Shown here: positions 12,148-62,900 of the stretch, piece after piece
Layout of the letters: each line of letters begins with the position of its first letter
Numbering within the stretch: the stretch's first letter is position 1
Sequence record: OR413575.1
Length of the DNA: 64,000 nt
Strand: one strand, 5' to 3'
Notes under the pieces: generated by a model
What the model was told of the DNA's origin: nothing
Databases searched by the model: none
What the model saw: only the letters and a program-made list of their open reading frames with translations
Translations under genes and position numbers: made by a program

Positions 12148-14607
12148 ATGCAGAAGATAGTTAGCGCTGAGGTATTCAAGAACAGCCGTATACTACTTGG
12201 TGAAGATTGTCATATCCGTTATAATCCTACCTCACCCTATCAAGTTATCATTGGACAGAATGGAATAGGTAAAACATCCTTCCTGCACAATCTGACATCA
12301 TATCCTTCCCTTGGAGGGAAGGTCTTTCATAAAGATGGGTTTTCGAACGTAGTTTTTGAACGCGATGGCGTTCGTATTGAAACTCGTCAACAACATGATG
12401 GTAAATACTCGTTTGTTGTTGATAACGAGGAGAAAAATACGGGTGGTACTAAAGCAGTTCAGTGCGATATGTTCGCAGATTACTTAGGTATCACCCCGAT
12501 AGTACAGCAGGTATTAGATCCTACGTTTGACTTCTTGGCAATGCGCCCTAACCAACGTCAAGAGTTCCTGGCTAAGTTAACTACAGGTGACTTATCGTTC
12601 GCTCTCCAGTTACATAAGCGTTTAGAGCAGCGAGCGCGTCAGCACGACAACGCAGTGAAGCGTATGGAAGTGAACTTAGTAGAACTGAAAGCTAAAGCGA
12701 TTGCGCCTGATGAGTACGAGAATCATAAGGCATCTTTAGAGAAGCTCCAGCAAGAAATCACTGAATTATACATGGAGATCGATAACAACGCTCAGAATGC
12801 GTCTGGTAGCGATTTAGATAGCATTGCTCGTCGTATCGGCGACTTAGAGAAATCATTAACTACGGAATGGGTTAAGTACTATACTTGGGGTGGCTGTGCA
12901 GGCGGTACTGAATCCGGTGCAATCGATATTCTTCATTCAATACGTAATAATATCACTGCCGAGGAAACTAAGCTCGAAGGTTTGATGCAACAGTTTCAGA
13001 TGTTCAGTGAAGTTAAAGATTCATTGAACAATGGAGATGTAGGTGATATTACCGATCGCCTCACGTCACTGGAACGTGAACTCGAGCAGTTACCTGACGC
13101 CGATACGCTAATGGATATCTGGTACGATACTGAATCAGATTACCGTAGTGCTATCAGGGAGCTCGAGTCATCGCTAGAGCAGATAGCCCCGCTAATCGCT
13201 ACAATCACCGGCGATTGGACAGAAGATCTATTACGCAGCGATCTAGAGGCCTTACGGACGAAGGTATCATTAACCCAGCAACAGATTTACAAGCTGGACG
13301 CTGAAATAGAAGGGATTGATAAGGAACTAGCTCATTCACATACCGGTGAAGTCCGTTGTCCCGATTGTGGTAAACAGTTTAACCCTACTCTGGATGAACG
13401 TCGTAAAGCAACGATGTTAAAACGTAAGGATGAAGTTACATCTGCTCGTCAGCGCGGCCAGAACTTGTTAGACGAGTTAGTAGCTCGTGGTACAGCAGTG
13501 AAAGAGATGCAAGACCAATACCGTAATATCCATGCTAAGTTAGGTGGTTACGCTTTAGGTCCTGTGCTTAATTGCGTTAATAATCAAACATCATTGTTAG
13601 AAGATCCTCAACAGTGGTTTAGATTATTGAATCAGTCTTTGATAACGTTACGGGCACGTGGTCATCAATGCTCTGTGGAAGCAGACATTCAGGTCATTCG
13701 TAAGCAGCAAGAAATGCTTGAATCTCAGAACCTGGGATCCAGTCAGTCACTTACGGAGAAGATGACCCACCTGGAAGATCAGATCTGGCATTGTCAGAGA
13801 CGCTCTGAGAAGCTCCGTATTGAACTCCGTGAACACAACGACCGTATGGAGAAAGTACGTCGTTACGAAGCGTGGGCAGAACGTCAGAACGCTCTATACG
13901 AGCAATTAGGCGATAACTTACTGTCATTGGCTGAGTATGAACTGAACCAGATGCGTAAAGACGCTTTAATTGTGTTACAATCGTCAGCATCTAACCTTTC
14001 TACGCTGATTGCTAACTATGAAAAAGATCATAACCAGATCGAGTATCTTGAAGGTTTAATTGAATCAGAACGTAAGGAAGGCGAAGCAGCTAAGTTGTCA
14101 GCGGAAGAACTCAGTCCTAAGACGGGTGCTATTGCAGAACAGTTGTTTGGGTTCATTAGTGCTTTCTTAGATGATGTTATGGAAATCTGTAACAACATCT
14201 GGACTTATCACGTAGAGATTTACTCAGGTAAGGATTCCGCGAGTAGCTTAACGTATTTGTTCCCGGTTGAGTTCAACTACTCCAGTACTCAGTCCGAAGA
14301 TATTGCGAAGACCTCAGAAGGTCAGTACTCTTTAATCAACTTTGCGATTAAAGTAACTTGCCTGCGTTACTTAGGTTATTCGAATGCTCCTATCTACTTA
14401 GATGAACCGGATGGTGATATCCACCCTGTCCATAAAGTTAAGATGATGAACTTCATCCGTGCTTTAGTAGAAGAAGAAGTATTCTCGCAGGTGTTCATGA
14501 TCAGCCACCATGAATCTGGTTGGGGTGCATTACCTTACCCTGATCTGGTAGACTTTAGTCAGGAACACGCACTGGCTGGAGCAAACGACGTCATTAAGTT
14601 TAAGTGA
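12148..14607 (+). CDS. sbcC: SbcC/Rad50-like SMC ATPase (phiKZ gp165-like)
   Basis: Walker A GQNGIGKT, long coiled coils, zinc hook CPDCG, signature TSEGQ, Walker B IYLDEPD, H-loop ISHH. Confidence 0.93.
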   Translation: MQKIVSAEVFKNSRILLGEDCHIRYNPTSPYQVIIGQNGIGKTSFLHNLTSYPSLGGKVFHKDGFSNVVFERDGVRIETRQQHDGKYSFVVDNEEKNTGGTKAVQCDMFADYLGITPIVQQVLDPTFDFLAMRPNQRQEFLAKLTTGDLSFALQLHKRLEQRARQHDNAVKRMEVNLVELKAKAIAPDEYENHKASLEKLQQEITELYMEIDNNAQNASGSDLDSIARRIGDLEKSLTTEWVKYYTWGGCAGGTESGAIDILHSIRNNITAEETKLEGLMQQFQMFSEVKDSLNNGDVGDITDRLTSLERELEQLPDADTLMDIWYDTESDYRSAIRELESSLEQIAPLIATITGDWTEDLLRSDLEALRTKVSLTQQQIYKLDAEIEGIDKELAHSHTGEVRCPDCGKQFNPTLDERRKATMLKRKDEVTSARQRGQNLLDELVARGTAVKEMQDQYRNIHAKLGGYALGPVLNCVNNQTSLLEDPQQWFRLLNQSLITLRARGHQCSVEADIQVIRKQQEMLESQNLGSSQSLTEKMTHLEDQIWHCQRRSEKLRIELREHNDRMEKVRRYEAWAERQNALYEQLGDNLLSLAEYELNQMRKDALIVLQSSASNLSTLIANYEKDHNQIEYLEGLIESERKEGEAAKLSAEELSPKTGAIAEQLFGFISAFLDDVMEICNNIWTYHVEIYSGKDSASSLTYLFPVEFNYSSTQSEDIAKTSEGQYSLINFAIKVTCLRYLGYSNAPIYLDEPDGDIHPVHKVKMMNFIRALVEEEVFSQVFMISHHESGWGALPYPDLVDFSQEHALAGANDVIKFK

Positions 14608-14654
14608 CAGCACAGGAGAGGAGCCAACCGGCTCCTCTCCGATTTGTGCTCTAA
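14608..14654. repeat. Convergent-junction palindromic element, copy B
   Basis: CAGCACAGGAGAGGAGCC-AACC-GGCTCCTCTCCGATTTGTGCTC between the SbcC stop and the stop of 14651..15247. Confidence 0.9.
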
Positions 14655-15247
14655 CCACTGATAACGGATTGTAATGCAGCGATCTGTTGGCGTAAGTCTT
14701 CGGCTTCTGCCTCTAGTTCGAGGTTACGAGCGTAAGTAGACTTACGATCTTTAATAGCCGCCTGACGATTTGCTTCCAGTACATCTGCATCTTCACGACT
14801 AATCCCTTGAGCCTCACCGATTACATCAATAAAGATCTCTGGTTCATAGCCGAGAGTGTCGCTCAATGTTTCTTTTACTTTCTGAGTAGTGAACCCAAAA
14901 TCATAATCAGTAGCAAAAGGACCGAGTAACGCTGATAATACATAGTTGGCATAGTTAGGAACGGATTGCGTAGGAAAGCTCTGAATATAAGTAGAAGGTA
15001 CAAACAGCATACCTCCTTCCTCATTATACAGAATAACCAAAGTAGCGCCTTCTTTATAGTCGGCTTCATACTTCGATTGTTCCACCTTCATTGGCTCGTA
15101 ATACGTCTTATAAATGTCGACAGAACTTCCCACAAGTTCGAGGAACGTCCGTAAACCAATAACAGTATAAGTACGAGCTGGATCAGCGACCCATGGTGTA
15201 CGCAATACAAACCGTCCCTTCGTATTTAACGGAGGTACAATATTCAT
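14651..15247 (-). CDS. Conserved phiKZ-like hypothetical (probable virion) protein
   Basis: 198-aa ORF with GAGG RBS and a C-terminal coiled coil, in a minus-strand structural operon. Confidence 0.7.
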   Translation of the reverse strand: MNIVPPLNTKGRFVLRTPWVADPARTYTVIGLRTFLELVGSSVDIYKTYYEPMKVEQSKYEADYKEGATLVILYNEEGGMLFVPSTYIQSFPTQSVPNYANYVLSALLGPFATDYDFGFTTQKVKETLSDTLGYEPEIFIDVIGEAQGISREDADVLEANRQAAIKDRKSTYARNLELEAEAEDLRQQIAALQSVISG

Positions 15248-52365: not shown

Positions 52366-53019
52366 ATGCACACTATCACCGTAACTCCTAAAGTAGAAAT
52401 TTCCACCCTTTGCCCTGCTAAGGTAAATACTAACCGCATCGAGTTCACTGTTGAAAGTAAGCTCGCATTCAACTTTCTCTGGGCCGCTGTACTGGCGTCT
52501 ATTTGGCACGACAACCAAGAAGTAAAACACCATTTCCGCGTTTCTCTGGAAACTGTTCAGGTAGAAGAACAACTCCCTGACAGTGCATCCGTTACTATTA
52601 ATCAAGTAATGGGTGTTAAGGTTGGTCAGCTGGGCGAGGATGTTTACATCTGCTTCGGTACTGACGAACCTGTTAAGCTGGAGATGGGTAATGTTTACTA
52701 TAACATCATCGAGCCTCTGTTCCGCAATGAACAAGTAGACATCAACTTCTCCTCAGATGTGGCCGATACTGTAATCGCTTATGAAGGCATGACGTGGACT
52801 TTGTTTGAGAACTACGACATGTATGGCGATGAATTCGATGATGGTCGTCAGTTCATTCTGGTAAGTAACACCGGTCTGATCATTGCTCTGGAGCAAGAGA
52901 TGAGTACTGCCAAGTGGGTTCGTTCACCTAACGATATCTGGAACAAGTTCAACCTGTCCATGGACAAGAACTTCCCTGGCTGGGTAGATGCAATCATTAA
53001 CCTGTTGGAGAATAACTAA
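52366..53019 (+). CDS. Hypothetical protein (paralog of 51782..52363)
   Basis: 217-aa ORF with GAGGA RBS. Confidence 0.75.
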   Translation: MHTITVTPKVEISTLCPAKVNTNRIEFTVESKLAFNFLWAAVLASIWHDNQEVKHHFRVSLETVQVEEQLPDSASVTINQVMGVKVGQLGEDVYICFGTDEPVKLEMGNVYYNIIEPLFRNEQVDINFSSDVADTVIAYEGMTWTLFENYDMYGDEFDDGRQFILVSNTGLIIALEQEMSTAKWVRSPNDIWNKFNLSMDKNFPGWVDAIINLLENN

Positions 53020-53939
53020 TGTTTACACTTAATTACATGTCTGCGGAAGAAGTAGAAGCGGTTAAACCAGATTACTTGAAGTATCCTTTAATCCGGCCAT
53101 CCCATCGTGTTGCCAACGTTATGGAGCCGAATAACGTATTGACGGTTTGCCCAACGGTTGAATGGATGCAGAAGCGTAAGAACATTCAGTCCGGTTCAGG
53201 TTATCGTCGTATAGGCGTCCCAGTGCCTGCCAGCACCGCTGATCGTTTCTTCCCGGACAAGATTGTCAATGCGTGCTGGAAATTCACTGGCGGCCTTGTG
53301 GCGTTCGTAGATAACGAGATCTTTATTATCGGTGATCGTTATTACAATAACTACGGATTCGCTAAGAGTCGTGATGAATCTTACGAAGTATTAGGTAAGG
53401 TCGAATCAGGTGGTGAATTTGCACCGCTGATCGTTCCTAACTTTGGTTTAGTATTGAAAGCCATGACTAAGTACGACTACCGTACTTGTTCAGGTGGCGG
53501 GAACAGTAAAACGAACTTTAACAGTTTCGACTTTGAAGCCAACGGTCAGTTGGATGACGATGGTCCGATGCCTATCCAAGCTAACTGGACTATCTATCTG
53601 GTTAAAGAAGAAGGTACTCCTCATCCGACTGATTTCATCGAAGGTTACAACGATGTCATGGATAAGATGGATCTTAATCCGCCTAAAGGCCAGTCGCTGG
53701 GTAAATTATTACAACATTGGGATTATCCTATGGATATGGAAGATAACTGCGAAATCCCTCTGTCCGATGGCCGTTTTCGTATGCTGGCCGGTACTCAGTA
53801 TAAAGCGTACCGTGGCTGGGAAATGGAATACGTTGAGGGATCGGGTAAAGTTACTTTGTCACATCGTCGTGATGGCGAAACTTCCGTACTGAGCTGTTAC
53901 CCAGGTCTGGAACATCCTTTCATTAAATCTTTTAAGTGA
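53019..53939 (+). CDS. Hypothetical protein
   Basis: 306-aa ORF, TAATG-coupled to the previous gene. Confidence 0.75.
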   Translation: MFTLNYMSAEEVEAVKPDYLKYPLIRPSHRVANVMEPNNVLTVCPTVEWMQKRKNIQSGSGYRRIGVPVPASTADRFFPDKIVNACWKFTGGLVAFVDNEIFIIGDRYYNNYGFAKSRDESYEVLGKVESGGEFAPLIVPNFGLVLKAMTKYDYRTCSGGGNSKTNFNSFDFEANGQLDDDGPMPIQANWTIYLVKEEGTPHPTDFIEGYNDVMDKMDLNPPKGQSLGKLLQHWDYPMDMEDNCEIPLSDGRFRMLAGTQYKAYRGWEMEYVEGSGKVTLSHRRDGETSVLSCYPGLEHPFIKSFK

Positions 53940-53947
53940 GTTAACAC

Positions 53948-54796
53948 ATGTCTGAAGCAAAAAATAAAATCATCACTAAGTTCGTTGATTTGGCAGAAGC
54001 ATTCATTCGCGAAAACAAAGAGTCTATCTTTCACGACGGTTATGTAATTCATCGCCTGAGCCATACTCGCGCGCAGAGTCCCACATTCTCTGCCCTGCTG
54101 ATGCGTTGTATCATTGCGTATCACGGCATTGATAAAATGGAAGATCTCAAACCAGGTAACGATCCTATCACTGAGTTTTATATCCGTTTACCGGCTATCC
54201 TCGGCAATGGGTTCAGTGCTTACCCGTCAGTACGTAAAGACCATCCATGGGCTGGTAGTCGTTACGAGTGGGAAACCACGCTCATGCAGCGTTTAACCGA
54301 ACTGGGTATTAATTACCTTGAGTTACCGCTGGCGATTGTTTGGTTGCAGTATGAGTTGGAACAGAAGATCATTTCTGAAACCAAAGACGACGGTTCATTG
54401 TCTCCTGATATGAAAGTTGGTACTGAAGTGTACAACGCTATCAATGTCGAACTTTCAAAACGTTTCGAGAAAGATTACCAAGATCGTCTCGAAGAACTCG
54501 ACCGTGAGGAAGCTGAACGCGCAACAGTAGAAGCAGCTGCTCCACCAGCTGCTCAAAATACGGCAGAACCAAAAGGCGTTGAACATCTTCTCGTCGACCC
54601 GAACTACGAGATGGTAACTACTCGTAGTATCATGCCGAAAGAAGAAACCAAAGACGACGGTTTCGATATCAATGCGTTAGATGCACTTAACATTGACGAT
54701 GCTTTAGAGCGCGTCGATGCTAAACGTTCCGGTGGGGGTGAAGCTATCGTTGTCGGTGAAGGTGATAACGATTGTGGCGACGCATGTAAAATCTAA
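53948..54796 (+). CDS. Hypothetical protein with an acidic tail ending in an NrdA-like DCGDACKI
   Basis: 282-aa ORF; C-terminus ...GEGDNDCGDACKI. Confidence 0.78.
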   Translation: MSEAKNKIITKFVDLAEAFIRENKESIFHDGYVIHRLSHTRAQSPTFSALLMRCIIAYHGIDKMEDLKPGNDPITEFYIRLPAILGNGFSAYPSVRKDHPWAGSRYEWETTLMQRLTELGINYLELPLAIVWLQYELEQKIISETKDDGSLSPDMKVGTEVYNAINVELSKRFEKDYQDRLEELDREEAERATVEAAAPPAAQNTAEPKGVEHLLVDPNYEMVTTRSIMPKEETKDDGFDINALDALNIDDALERVDAKRSGGGEAIVVGEGDNDCGDACKI

Positions 54797-54802
54797 CCGC
54801 AC

Positions 54803-54836
54803 AATTGGAGAACCCTTCGGGGTTCTCCAATTTTTT
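54803..54836 (+). terminator. Rho-independent terminator
   Basis: AATTGGAGAACCC-TTCG-GGGTTCTCCAATT followed by a T-run. Confidence 0.85.
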
Positions 54837-54850
54837 GTTTGAGGACTATT

Positions 54851-55306
54851 ATGGATATTCGTTTACTGCATGGCGGTACAGATAAAAGAGTTTTAACTAA
54901 ACTCTTAGATCTTCACAAGGAGTTTGATAAACAGGAAAAAGAAGTTTCCTCTAAATCAGTAGTTGATATATTGGCTAATTACTCCGGGTGGTTTGATAAT
55001 ATAGAAAAATGCCTGGACTACGACATTGTACTAGGTGCGTTTGACTGCGGGGAATTAGTAGGGTTTATTACGGGACACGTATCGGAAGATCATGGTAAAA
55101 GATCTTTAAATATTTGTTCATTATACATTGATACCGAACATCGCCGCGAAGGGTACGGTAAAGCCCTATATAAACGCATAATACAAGAAGCAGAGGATAT
55201 TGCATCAGTCAGTCTCGTAACCTATATTAGCAATACGTCAGCTATGATGTTTTATAAATCGTTAGGGCTAAAAGTTTATGCTCAGTATTTGGGAAAAGTA
55301 ATTTAA
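54851..55306 (+). CDS. GNAT-family N-acetyltransferase (start placed at ATG 54851)
   Basis: Motif A LYIDTEHRREGYGKAL, and NTSAMMFYKSLG. GAGG RBS at 54841. Confidence 0.85.
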   Translation: MDIRLLHGGTDKRVLTKLLDLHKEFDKQEKEVSSKSVVDILANYSGWFDNIEKCLDYDIVLGAFDCGELVGFITGHVSEDHGKRSLNICSLYIDTEHRREGYGKALYKRIIQEAEDIASVSLVTYISNTSAMMFYKSLGLKVYAQYLGKVI

Positions 55307-55946: not shown

Positions 55947-56147
55947 ATGTTCGGATTGTCTGAAGTCGATAACGCCTTCTTAGTTGGATTATTAATGGCA
56001 TTAGCATATTCGGGTGCTGTGATATCATTCGTTACAGCTTCGACGAAACAACCGTTTGCGCGATACATTACATCGGTGGCTAGTATTGCTCTCACTGGTG
56101 TCATTTTAATATTGATCGCTTACTTAACTCAAAAAGGTATTTTGTAA
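55947..56147 (+). CDS. 66-aa two-pass membrane protein
   Basis: Two hydrophobic helices; GAGGGA RBS; TAATG-coupled to the DHH gene. Confidence 0.68.
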   Translation: MFGLSEVDNAFLVGLLMALAYSGAVISFVTASTKQPFARYITSVASIALTGVILILIAYLTQKGIL

Positions 56148-57427
56148 TGGCTTACTTAAAACTCCCTACTGTTGTAGATATTAACTCTACCATGATCATC
56201 CGTGAAGTTTATGGACCAGATGGTGAAGTTGCACTGAAAGATATTCGCGTCATTACTCGCCCCCGTCGTTATGAAGATATGGTGAATCCACGCGCATCTT
56301 ACATGATGGCTGATGTAGTAGATGTAGATGGCACTACTCGCCCGTTTGGATTCGGATACATGCTGGAGCGTGAAGCTGAGTTCTACGACATGATTGCTGC
56401 GCTGAACGCAATCATTAAAGGTACGGCTACTAGCTTCAATACCATGACTAATGAAGTCACACTCTCTGAGGCTGGCGCTAAAGAATCAGAGGTGCATAAC
56501 CTCATCATGTATCATGGTGATTGCGTTGACGGTATGGCGGCTGCGTGGGTAGCGCGTACGTGGGCAAATGGACGTAAACAAACCTACGATCTCATCCCGG
56601 TACATTATGGTCAACCGGTGCCGAAGATCCCTACTCCTAACGGTAAAGAAATCCGTATCCATATTCTGGACTTCTCTTATACACTGGAGAAAATCCAGGA
56701 GATGGTAGCCTACTACAAACCTACTTCGGTTATCTACATCGATCATCATGCTACGGCTGAAAAAGATCTGATGGATGCAGACCTGTGGTTAACAATGACA
56801 GCCGAAATCGCTAACGATGTCCGTTTCGAAGGACATACTCCTGGTGTAAGTGGGGCAGTATTAGCCTGGCGTACTTACTTCCCCGAATCGGATATGCCTG
56901 AATCTATCATCCGTGTAGGGGATCGCGATACATGGCGCTTTAAGTACGAGGAGTCTAAAGATTTCCATCAACTTGCCGGTCTTTATCTGAATGAACCAGA
57001 TCGTTGGGATTTCGTGTTCTACGATCGCTTCTTCAATGACAACTGTATGCAAGGTTGCGCTATTAAACAATTCAGTGATCGACTGGTTGATAAATACAGC
57101 GCCAGTGACAAGTTACGTCACATCGAAGACAACGGTGCGAAGGGTGCTATCGTTAACTTCCCACGTGAGTTCGTGAGTGACTTGTGCGCCACTATACTGG
57201 ATAAGAACCCAGGGTATATGTTTGCAATGGCGTACCAATGTAACGTAGACCATTGGAAGTTTGATTTGCGTAGTCCTGGTCGTGATAAAGAAGACCAATA
57301 TGACTGCGGAGAGGTCGCTCGTTTGTTTGGAGGCGGCGGTCATGTAGGGGCGGCTGGTATTGTTGTACCACGCGATGACAAGAAAATTCTTCGTGCAATC
57401 GAAAAACATTTCGGGTTTACACTATGA
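56147..57427 (+). CDS. DHH/DHHA1-family phosphoesterase with an N-terminal extension
   Basis: Motifs YHGDCVDG, ILDFS, IDHHAT, DRDTW and GGGGHVGAAG. Confidence 0.9.
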   Translation: MAYLKLPTVVDINSTMIIREVYGPDGEVALKDIRVITRPRRYEDMVNPRASYMMADVVDVDGTTRPFGFGYMLEREAEFYDMIAALNAIIKGTATSFNTMTNEVTLSEAGAKESEVHNLIMYHGDCVDGMAAAWVARTWANGRKQTYDLIPVHYGQPVPKIPTPNGKEIRIHILDFSYTLEKIQEMVAYYKPTSVIYIDHHATAEKDLMDADLWLTMTAEIANDVRFEGHTPGVSGAVLAWRTYFPESDMPESIIRVGDRDTWRFKYEESKDFHQLAGLYLNEPDRWDFVFYDRFFNDNCMQGCAIKQFSDRLVDKYSASDKLRHIEDNGAKGAIVNFPREFVSDLCATILDKNPGYMFAMAYQCNVDHWKFDLRSPGRDKEDQYDCGEVARLFGGGGHVGAAGIVVPRDDKKILRAIEKHFGFTL

Positions 57428-59946: not shown

Positions 59947-62900
59947 TTAAACTTTCTGGCTAACGGAAGCGGTCAGACGAGTACCATCCCACATTACAGT
60001 GATGTTGGTATAGGTAGCACCCATTACAGGAGCACGCTCTTCAGTCCATTTCATGGTGCTCGGCCAGGTGATGTTACCGGTAGAGCCTTCCATCACGACA
60101 ACAAACACTTGCGCACGGTTAGCAGGCAGGTTGTTGAACTTGATGGTCATCTGTTTGGTGCCGTCGATGATGAAGCAGTTGAATTCATCAGCGTTGAAGT
60201 TACCATCAGTAACACGAGTAATGGCCAGGTTGTAAGTATCCAGACCGAACTCAGCCCAGGCTTTACCTTTACGAACGTATTGTTTCCCGTCGTTAGGTGC
60301 TTCCTGTACCGGCAGCGGAACCCACTCACCAGCCAAACGAACCTGATGGATATACTTCTCAACGGTATCGTAAACGTTACCACCACCGATATTGGCTAAC
60401 AGAACCCAGCGAGTGGTAGAAACTTTCTGGTGAAGTTCATTGGCAGTGTATACCCACGCCAAGTCACCTTCCTGACCATCTAAAGCAGTAGGACGAGCGG
60501 CCATCGGAATTACACGATTACCGTCTTTACCATCTGCCCCTTTCTTACCAGGAGCACCGTCTTTACCGTTGGTACCGTTGGTACCGTCTTCGCCTTTCAG
60601 CTTCTGACCAGTAGAGATGAATTTGTTCTGATCGGCAGACCACATCCACAGAACACCATCAACCATGTACCCATCGCCAGTTTCACCCGTAGAAGGTAAC
60701 TGAGATTCGTTATCCAGGTAATCTTTTACCGGGACAGACGGACCTACAGGACCCTGCTTACCTTCCGGGCCTTCTTTACCCTCAGGACCGATCAAAGAAG
60801 TCAGGTATTCTTCGATAGTGCCTTCGAAACCATTAGCTACAGCGATCTGGTATGCAGACTGACCTGCCTCACCAGTCAGGGATGCGATCCACTGAGCTTC
60901 ATTACCGTTGAACCCTTGGCGTACTGCGATAGCGTAAGCTGATTCGCCTTTCTGAGTTTCAAGGAACTGTTGCTCTGTGCCCTGGAAGCCATTACGCTTA
61001 GCTACTTGGTAGATGCTTTCGCCGTTATCGCCCTTCTCACCATGAAGAGATTGCAGCCATGCGGTTTTATCTCCCTGGAAACCGGCTTCTACCGCGATGT
61101 CGTAAGCCGACTTACCGTCAGGCCCGATATCACCTTTAGCACCTTTGAGGGATGCAATCCACTCATCGAGTGTACCGGTAAAGCCTTGCTGTTGAGCTAG
61201 CTCAAACGCAGACTTACCGTCAGGCCCACGGAATTCTGAACCAGCTTTATAACCGGTTTCAGTCCAGAGGTACATGGTGTTGCCAACTAAATAAATAGTT
61301 GATACGTCACCCGTCTCAGGTAAGGACCCTACGTCAGCAGCTTCAACAATCTTGTCAAACCCAGGAGCACGCAGAGATACCAGCCATTCAGCTTCAGTTC
61401 CTGCAAATCCCTGATCTTTGGCAATGTCAAATGCAGACTTACCGGTGTCACCACGCAGGCTAACTAGCCATGCAGCCTCATCACCTACGAAGCCTTTATC
61501 AACCGCAAGCTGATATGCGTCTTTACCCGGCTTACCAACCAGAGAAGCTAACCACTCTTCTTCGGTACCGTTAAAGCCTTTCTGGACAGCCAGTTTGTAC
61601 CCGTTGTCACCTTCTAGTGATTTCAGGTAATCTTCAACCGTGCCAGTGAAGCCTTCTTGAACAGCCAGCTCGTAAGCTGAGTAACCAGGAGCGCCGTCTT
61701 TACCATTCAGGCTAGCCAGCCACGCAGCTTCAGTGCCTTCGAAACCACCTTCTACAGCTGCTTCGTACGCGGATTGACCAACGTCACCTTGCTTACCGTG
61801 GAGCGACTGAATCCATTCCGTTTCAGTTCCAGCGTAACCACCTTTAACAGCAGTCTGATAAGCGCTCTCACCAGTATTCCCTTTAAGGGATGCGATCCAT
61901 TCGGATTCGGATCCGGTATAACCGCCTTCTTTGGCAATCTCGTATGCAGATTTACCATCGGGTCCGATGTCGCCCTTTTCGCCTTTGATGTTACCAGCAT
62001 CGTACCATGCATCGTTGATCCATAGATACATGTTGGTGCCGACCATCCAGTAGTATTCGGAATCACCAGTAGGTGGTAAATCTTTGGCGTCAGTTACTGC
62101 ACCGCCAGCACGCAGACCCGGAGATTTCAGAGAAGCAATGAATGCAGTCTCGTCACCTACGAAGCCATTGTCTACCGCTACTTGATAAGCTGACTTACCG
62201 TCCGGTCCTACCAGAGATGCGAGCCATGCTGCTTCGTCGCCTTCGAAACCAGCCTTCTTAGCCAGTTCAAATGCGGATTCACCATCAGTACCATCAAGGC
62301 CGTCTTTACCATGTAAAGAAGCTAACCACTCCTCGCGGCTACCTTTATAACCGGCTTCCTGAGCGACAGCAAAAGCATCCTTACCGTCAGGACCCTGTTC
62401 ACCTTCTTTGCCTTGACCGCCACGAATTGCTTCGACGTAATCTTCGAAGGTCACTTCTTCGGGCTTAGGTTGGCGCTCTTTCCATACTTCAAAAGCATCT
62501 TTACCTTCCGGACCACGTTGTCCGAAGATAGACCATTCTTCGCCAGTCCAAATGTAGATGATACCTTTGATCAGATATGCATCGCCATTCTTCTCAGCAG
62601 ATTCAGGCAGGTCTTCTACTTCAGGCAGAGGACCGATAACGTTAATACCAGTACCATCCCGGCCAGCTGGTCCACGGAAGTCACCGATATCAACCCACGT
62701 TTGTTCACCAGTAATAGTACTGTGAATGAACAGGAAGATATGAGTACCGATTACGTAGAACTCGCCGTAATTGGAATCAGCTGCTGCTGGGAGTTCAGAC
62801 TCGTCGTTCAACTCGCCGCGATATTTGAATGCGAGGGAAGACATGAGATCTGCGATAGTAATCCCGTAGTTATCGCCAGCGGACGCTAACGGGATGATCT

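Follow-up and report, generated by a model that had tools for sequence, protein, structure and literature searches.

Class Ia ribonucleotide reductase (RNR) is the bottleneck in the supply of DNA precursors, and two flexible tails of the enzyme serve its assembly and its recharging. In eukaryotes, RNR is regulated by small acidic or disordered proteins, namely Sml1, Spd1, Hug1 and Dif1. A literature search found no phage or bacterial counterpart of these regulators, the open-access texts yielded no account of a phage-encoded or free-standing mimic of an RNR tail, and we know of no bacterial or phage protein that acts through the flexible tails of RNR. In the alpha subunit of the E. coli enzyme, NrdA, the last 24 residues are disordered and C754/C759 pass electrons from thioredoxin to C225/C462 (bioRxiv 10.1101/2021.07.31.454598; PMC9669993). 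Class II RNRs possess a C-terminal domain in which a Cys-rich zinc finger precedes a Cys pair through which turnover proceeds (PMC5704485; PMC9669993). The gene considered here lies in a window of 64,000 nucleotides, the whole stretch of DNA that was analysed, whose base 1 is base 62,001 of record OR413575.1 (210,197 bp; identity 100%), the genome of Salmonella phage SPLA10. On the plus strand of the window, an open reading frame (ORF) at 53948..54796 begins with ATG and encodes 282 amino acids plus a stop, with the C-terminus GEGDNDCGDACKI-stop. A preliminary description of this DNA had drawn attention to its terminal GDNDCGDACKI, and the ORF is indeed annotated, as coding sequence (CDS) WNT47164.1, 'hypothetical protein' (115948-116796 of the record), while the opposite strand of 53948-54796 holds no ORF longer than 75 amino acids. 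The comparisons reported below indicate that this ending is a copy of the NrdA redox tail carried on a small portable module.

E. coli NrdA, an annotated class 1a RNR alpha subunit of 761 amino acids that was obtained via a blastn match of an enterobacterial nrdA 3' end, terminates in QDDGCESGACKI, that is, in a Cx4C pair followed by K-I. When the two endings are compared, DNDCGDACKI in SPLA10 and DDGCESGACKI in NrdA, they share an acidic disordered stretch, two cysteines and then exactly two residues (K-I), with a Cx3C spacing in SPLA10 as against Cx4C in NrdA; both the likeness and the narrower spacing had been claimed in the preliminary description and can be read directly from these endings. 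Beyond E. coli, bacterial genomes were scanned with a degenerate DNA pattern back-translated from the endings of homologues, which returned at least 120 loci. About 100 of those listed are gammaproteobacterial NrdA ORFs of 750-830 amino acids that end in an acidic run, C-x-x-G-A-C-K-I and a stop, although the frequencies of NrdA endings in this sample are biased because the scan was pattern-selected and refers to the matches listed. Phage enzymes end alike: when a stand-alone family member from Stenotrophomonas phage BUCTxx100 served as the tblastn query, its tail half matched proteins annotated as RNR alpha subunits in Colwellia and Pseudoalteromonas phages. Moreover, the last eight residues of the homologue P0009 are those of E. 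coli NrdA, and several family members are identical to NrdA over their 8-10 terminal residues. In the 210-kb SPLA10 genome, a single one of the 1912 stop-to-stop segments of at least 40 codons in six frames ends in C-x(2-4)-C-x-I, and judged by these comparisons the likeness of the SPLA10 ending to NrdA is not due to chance. PDB sequences, searched with the tail or P0009 as the query and with the profile of the family, yielded de novo TIM barrels and noise rather than NrdA, since HMMER needs a longer stretch in common, and a DNA-level search of E. coli genomes with the tail region gave only a chance match in adk. The stretch that precedes the Cys pair in the module was also considered as a homologue of the long C-terminal extensions of NrdA with 'VDAK'-type strings, a candidate that was rejected as the profile did not score above shuffles.

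An AlphaFold2 model of the SPLA10 protein, built on nine homologues, separates three parts, all encoded on the plus strand. Residues 1-200 (53948..54547) form an N-terminal domain with a predicted local distance difference test score (pLDDT) of about 90, so that the folded domain proposed earlier stands while its purely helical character does not, the model being mixed alpha/beta. It is followed by a predicted disordered linker at residues 202-238 (54551..54661; pLDDT <50) that is poorly conserved and varies in length between homologues. Its long, acidic and probably disordered nature had been anticipated from the letters; residues 200-282 include 19 Asp and Glu residues as against 8 Lys and Arg residues. 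The third part, residues 237-282 (54656..54793), is the portable tail module, which is homologous to free-standing phage and bacterial proteins of 41-94 amino acids and whose 46 residues add up to a charge of -8. The module is laid out as an acidic-hydrophobic motif with two short helices (residues 241-245 and 249-261 in the model), a G-G-G-E turn (residues 262-265; 54731-54742), then an acidic run, and finally the end with the Cys pair, residues 262-282 being disordered with pLDDT <50. The NrdA-like end, delimited by comparison with E. coli NrdA and the approximately 100 NrdA ORFs, comprises residues 272-282 (54761..54793) with Cys276 (54773-54775), Cys280 (54785-54787) and the terminal Ile (54791-54793); the sole further cysteine of the protein is C54.

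Searches of the whole protein against Pfam, NCBIfam and PHROGs found no RNR domain, neither the ATP-cone (PF03477) nor the all-alpha domain (PF00317) nor the ten-stranded barrel (PF02867), in keeping with the earlier statement that RNR motifs are missing from the rest of the sequence, whereas all three domains were matched by Pfam in the positive control, the Yersinia pestis member of the approximately 100 NrdA ORFs. A thioredoxin fold with a CxxC at the N-terminus of a helix was likewise found neither by Pfam nor by Foldseek, and the Cys pair sits outside the folded domain in a region with pLDDT <50. The SPLA10 protein is thus neither an RNR nor a thioredoxin-fold protein. Pfam, NCBIfam and PADLOC gave no match for it or for the stand-alone members of the module family. 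In contrast to the NrdA tail, its module occurs outside any RNR, being free-standing or fused to unrelated domains.

The conservation of the terminal cysteines, on which the preliminary description had made its proposal depend, is pronounced. Searches with the whole SPLA10 protein identified few close homologues, 3 among 5.8 billion proteins and 8 among 1.84 billion representatives, and nine of the ten proteins found in this way carry the Cys pair followed by two residues at their end, the exception being P0007 (L135:522-1184), an N-domain homologue lacking the whole tail module. The Cys-Cys spacing among these close relatives switches between 3, 4 and 2. By contrast to the few relatives of the whole protein, a profile search with the module gave 85 clusters of proteins of 41-94 amino acids at E<=1.2e-3, all of them 'hypothetical' or unnamed. 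In the 82 small homologues that were tallied, the terminal Cys pair and exactly two residues after the second Cys are invariant (82/82 for both), Ile is the last residue in 81 and the G-G-G-E turn is found in 73, with a net charge between -7 and -16; the two cysteines are separated by four residues in 64, by three in 7 and by two in 11. A pairwise comparison of the SPLA10 module with a 49-amino-acid peptide from IMG/VR gave an E value of 6e-8, and still 1e-4 once the tail was removed.

The same family is recovered from nucleotide records. The last 48 SPLA10 residues alone matched 83 phage records in tblastn, and the 46-amino-acid stand-alone protein of BUCTxx100 matched 101 records, including a reciprocal match to SPLA10 with an E value of 3e-3. 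The records belong mostly to jumbo phages of Erwinia, Klebsiella, Dickeya, Serratia, Yersinia, Salmonella and Cronobacter and to 52-kb Chaseviridae related to phiEcoM-GJ1. In PHROGs v4, the 47-position profile phrog_10239 is matched by gp34 of phage Yoloswag (1e-10), the BUCTxx100 peptide (5e-5) and the SPLA10 end (0.0069), while no match to it was obtained with the whole SPLA10 protein, because the module makes up one sixth of the protein. The phrog_10239 entry itself is of unknown function and, in contrast to the reading developed here, carries no link to RNR. Stand-alone module genes are found in BUCTxx100, Serratia phage PCH45 (49 amino acids), Erwinia phage Alexandra (54 amino acids) and Klebsiella phage Miami, where the gene for 46 amino acids is accompanied by an annotated ribosome-binding site and terminator. 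In phiEcoM-GJ1 the module is encoded by an unannotated ORF of 46-47 amino acids (L006:5001-5141; NC_010106.1 ~14,573-14,716) just downstream of tRNA-Arg and 1.6 kb upstream of the thymidylate synthase gene. Besides SPLA10, the module is joined to different N-terminal parts in Yoloswag gp34 (146 amino acids), in a protein of Salmonella phage SA002 (163 amino acids) and in P0010 and P0011.

Gene order places the SPLA10 fusion in the same family. The gene upstream of it, encoding 306 amino acids (53019..53939, plus strand), marks a conserved slot: in PCH45 a 299-amino-acid homologue of its product (BLASTP E 1e-21) is directly followed by the 49-amino-acid module gene, and in the metagenomic relatives L136, L137 and L138 the SPLA10 gene order is kept with the fused form. 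Because the stand-alone module of PCH45 follows the same upstream gene, the fused SPLA10 gene can be assigned to the usual slot, and SPLA10 carries the usual module in its usual position, extended N-terminally by a rare domain. Profile, motif counts and synteny all place the SPLA10 tail in the phrog_10239-type module family. The impression of a one-off protein given by the preliminary description is thereby superseded, since the tail is a module of about 46 amino acids that mostly occurs as a mini-protein of its own, and the N-terminal part of 230 amino acids is, by its distribution, a lineage-specific addition to the module that is found in a handful of relatives.

The genomic setting of the module points to deoxynucleotide supply. 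For SPLA10, phiEcoM-GJ1 and Yoloswag (whole genome), no RNR, thioredoxin or glutaredoxin is annotated and no class Ia NrdA or NrdB was found by tblastn, the absence of RNR referring to these three phages and being judged by annotation alone for classes II and III. The only similarity to NrdA in phiEcoM-GJ1 is that of E. coli residues 742-761 to the end of the module. Genes for thymidylate synthesis are present in all three phages, namely thymidylate synthase and thymidylate kinase in SPLA10, ThyA and dUTPase in phiEcoM-GJ1, and dCMP deaminase, ThyA, Tmk and dUTPase in Yoloswag. Furthermore, module genes lie 0.7-5 kb from the genes for ThyA and/or dCMP deaminase in phiEcoM-GJ1, Alexandra, JA33 and Yoloswag and at the loci L165/L170, L148, L151 and L142. 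Among the loci examined, no RNR gene stands beside any tail gene other than nrdA itself. As SPLA10 is devoid of an RNR of its own, a mimic would have to act on the host enzyme. In addition, a protein of 162 amino acids in the bacterial metagenome-assembled genome CG10_46_32 (L069:3297-3785) carries a glutaredoxin domain and a Cys-rich ribbon ahead of the NrdA-like ending; it is flanked by genes for a DNA methylase and an MvaI/BcnI endonuclease, with no RNR gene within 8 kb. The fusion of a glutaredoxin domain to the same ending ties this ending to its known reductant.

On balance, these observations make it rather probable that the module targets the relay of RNR, thioredoxin and glutaredoxin in the host. 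The version we prefer, to which we give somewhat below an even chance, is that the module would serve as a surrogate NrdA redox tail that acts in trans to recharge the host class Ia RNR. Host thioredoxin or glutaredoxin would reduce the two cysteines of the module, as they do C754/C759 of NrdA, whereupon the Cys end would enter the NrdA active site in place of the tail and re-reduce the C225-C462 disulfide. The upstream acidic-hydrophobic motif and helix would dock the module, the flexible G-G-G-E and acidic stretch would provide the reach, and the N-domain specific to SPLA10 and its relatives may add anchoring or binding of a partner. In this way the host RNR could be kept turning over for the benefit of a phage that has thymidylate-synthesis genes and is without an RNR. 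We infer every binding and redox step, as well as the sign of the effect, from sequence. The helper function is preferred because the phages that were checked depend on the host RNR, because the module sits with genes for dTMP synthesis, and because the glutaredoxin fusion is sensible only for productive electron transfer.

Several observations must be set against a trans-acting surrogate tail. Only the acidic run and the Cys end resemble NrdA, the SPLA10 pair is spaced as Cx3C and the spacing varies within the family, so that the geometry may not match that of NrdA, and the NrdA tails used for comparison are those of E. coli and other Enterobacterales rather than that of Salmonella itself. 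Some members of the family possess a docking motif that resembles NrdB, and if this motif occupies the cleft for the beta tail, inhibition would be expected rather than help. Moreover, in the one published transcriptome considered (PMC4848604), the RNA-seq reads for g117 of Yersinia phage phiR1-37 (NC_016163.1 72622-72738), a weak match to the family with an E value of 0.07, are close to nil throughout the time course.

The main alternative to the helper function takes the module as a bivalent inhibitor of the host class Ia RNR in the manner of Sml1, which is an unlikely but still serious candidate. The upstream motif would fill the NrdA cleft for the NrdB tail and the Cys end would sit in the active-site channel or become cross-linked to it, blocking docking as well as regeneration. 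C-terminal peptides of the beta subunit compete with beta for alpha, and a part of the family starts with what appears to be such a peptide. In the stand-alone IMG/VR peptides L150:4275-4424 and L151:1117-1266, whose GTG start lies behind an AAGGAG-type site, the first eight residues after the start codon are exactly the last eight of gammaproteobacterial NrdB of several species, and in L148:2193-2348, also from IMG/VR, they nearly match; the eight-residue motif is thus N-terminal in these module members and C-terminal in NrdB. When NrdB C-termini were collected from the loci of the NrdA proteins and the members were scored with a matrix of the last eight residues against 1000 shuffles, these peptides stood far above the shuffles, and 10 of 52 members reached p<=0.05 (2.6 expected) and 4 of 52 reached p<=0.01. 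The NrdB-like start is found only in some relatives (L150, L148, P0015 and L145), and the peptides that have it share homology with the SPLA10 module beyond the tail (E 1e-4), which also counts in favour of inhibition. However, the corresponding motif of SPLA10 is unlike the NrdB tail (p = 0.76 with the same matrix against shuffles), and a hidden Markov model test for NrdB-tail likeness on the first set of members was not significant. The NrdB-like start is therefore best treated as a lead for a subset of the family and not as a property of the SPLA10 protein. It also speaks against an inhibitor that the phages checked are without an RNR, so that shutting off the host enzyme would leave them only salvage from host DNA, and a glutaredoxin fusion is hard to square with a pure inhibitor. 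The parallel with Sml1, Spd1, Hug1 and Dif1 is one of functional analogy only, consisting in the proposed action on RNR via flexible parts, as no search revealed a sequence relation to them.

Rather improbable, but compatible with part of the data, is a role of the ending as bait for thioredoxin or glutaredoxin that is unrelated to RNR catalysis, either as a redox sink or by bringing reductant to a partner of the upstream part. Phage use of host thioredoxin has a precedent in T7 DNA polymerase. A scan of IMG/VR for the ending returned phage NrdA genes together with many unrelated proteins that end alike, while a fixed-spacing DNA pattern retrieved only 4 loci. The unrelated carriers include peptides of about 50 amino acids, zinc-ribbon mini-proteins (L149, L167) and proteins of 61-104, 124, 267, 309 and 372 amino acids, and in L172:1193-1585 the ending caps a protein of the N4 gp49 / Sf6 gene 66 family (PF13876, 8e-27). 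That so many unrelated proteins (zinc-ribbon, N4 gp49-family and others of 124-372 amino acids) are capped in this way fits a general recruiting tag. The stand-alone zinc-ribbon proteins with the NrdA-like ending are comparable with the zinc-finger domain of class II RNRs, whereas the SPLA10 protein has no zinc ribbon. Bacterial members add an oxidative-stress context. Stand-alone family genes for about 50 amino acids occur at 13 loci in Alishewanella, Rheinheimera and related genomes, and at five Rheinheimera loci (L037, L047, L093, L096 and L098) the gene lies directly upstream of a catalase gene and an ankyrin-repeat gene on the same strand. In a second bacterial type, found in Alishewanella and others, the family gene is located between an amidohydrolase gene and a convergent gene for an MFS transporter. 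Against a mere bait, both the recurrent proximity to genes for ThyA and dCMP deaminase and the genomes without an RNR speak for a role in deoxynucleotide supply. The strict rule that the second Cys is followed by two residues, the last of them Ile, suggests that the ending fits a specific pocket and is more than a reducible disulfide.

Still more doubtful is an unrelated function with a convergent ending, such as a metal-binding acidic peptide or a modified precursor composed of leader and core. A short acidic peptide with two cysteines could bind Zn, Fe or Cu, and the upstream F-D-x-D-type motif presumably recalls, if loosely, the boxes of leader peptides. No maturation enzymes are found among the neighbours examined, and the identity to NrdA over 8-10 terminal residues comes in several variants that follow the NrdA variants of the host lineages, which argues against convergence. 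Thus, at the position behind the first Cys, NrdA of Enterobacterales has Glu, as do 58 of the 82 module endings, those of Enterobacterales phages included. Ala takes this position in NrdA of Alteromonas and of most of the other marine genera sampled, and the peptides of Rheinheimera and Alishewanella have Ala or Ser there.

The N-domain offers little that would tie the tail to an activity of its own. Foldseek found nothing in the PDB at E<=0.001 and only weak matches to uncharacterised phage proteins in BFVD. The invariant columns among relatives are S26, H35, A42, P45, L50, P93, G120 and L169, with no conserved Cys in the domain. The domain was not seen as a separate gene beside stand-alone modules, and SPLA10 has no paralogues of it. 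The earlier suggestion that the protein delivers reducing power to another phage enzyme accordingly finds no support in this domain. A redox arm acting in cis, in which the tail would recharge a disulfide active site of the fused N-domain as in NrdA, copies the order of folded domain, disordered acidic linker and Cys pair, but is largely excluded and very improbable, since C54, the single cysteine of the N-domain, is not invariant, since the module usually stands free of any domain, and since the N-domain homologue P0007 has neither the tail nor a module gene after it, its context being a different one in which a gene for a small membrane protein and a dUTPase gene follow it.

At the SPLA10 locus, the CDS (53948..54796, plus strand) starts 8 nucleotides past the stop of the upstream gene. 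Seven nucleotides past its own stop lies a strong terminator-like hairpin with a 13-bp stem containing 6 G-C pairs and a T run (54803..54842, plus strand), and the gene therefore closes a transcription unit. The hairpin separates it from the downstream gene of a GNAT acetyltransferase, whose annotated start is at window position 54851 rather than at the TTG at 54839 with which the program-made ORF opens. A few genes further downstream, a DHH/DHHA1 phosphoesterase (phrog_4771, 2e-55) is encoded at 56147-57427 of the window; its position is kept in L136-L138, and Yoloswag has a DHH/DHHA1 phosphoesterase too, at another location of the genome. Two of the metagenomic relatives carry an AcrVA2-like gene (PF26125) three genes upstream of the fusion gene (L137:1469-2764 and L138:2112-3389). 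The SPLA10 genome has a G+C content of 44.6%, and because its record includes genes for a nuclear-shell protein, a PhuZ tubulin and a split multisubunit RNA polymerase, SPLA10 is a nucleus-forming jumbo phage.

Taken together, the family can tentatively, and with more doubt than the helper function, be viewed as 'RNR-tail chimeras' of phages and a few Gammaproteobacteria, that is, disordered proteins of about 50 amino acids in which a copy of the NrdA redox tail may be joined to a docking motif, in some of them one identical to the C-terminus of NrdB, while unrelated proteins may be tagged with the same portable NrdA ending. With about 100 phage records and no fewer than 85 protein clusters, a conserved family that copies the alpha tail, and in a subset of its members the beta tail too, makes this a concrete hypothesis for work on sequence and structure; the result assigns a lead to a PHROG of 'unknown function', phrog_10239, reveals unannotated small genes such as that of phiEcoM-GJ1 and points out bacterial homologues beside catalase genes. 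Binding of such chimeras to NrdA, if it occurs, would make them the first protein regulators of class Ia RNR, whether helpers or inhibitors, to be described in bacteria or phages. The hypothesis covers how RNR-less phages, among them nucleus-forming jumbo phages and Chaseviridae, may secure or throttle dNTP synthesis in the host, and, if true, it would describe a new route by which phages without an RNR of their own control the deoxynucleotide supply of their hosts.

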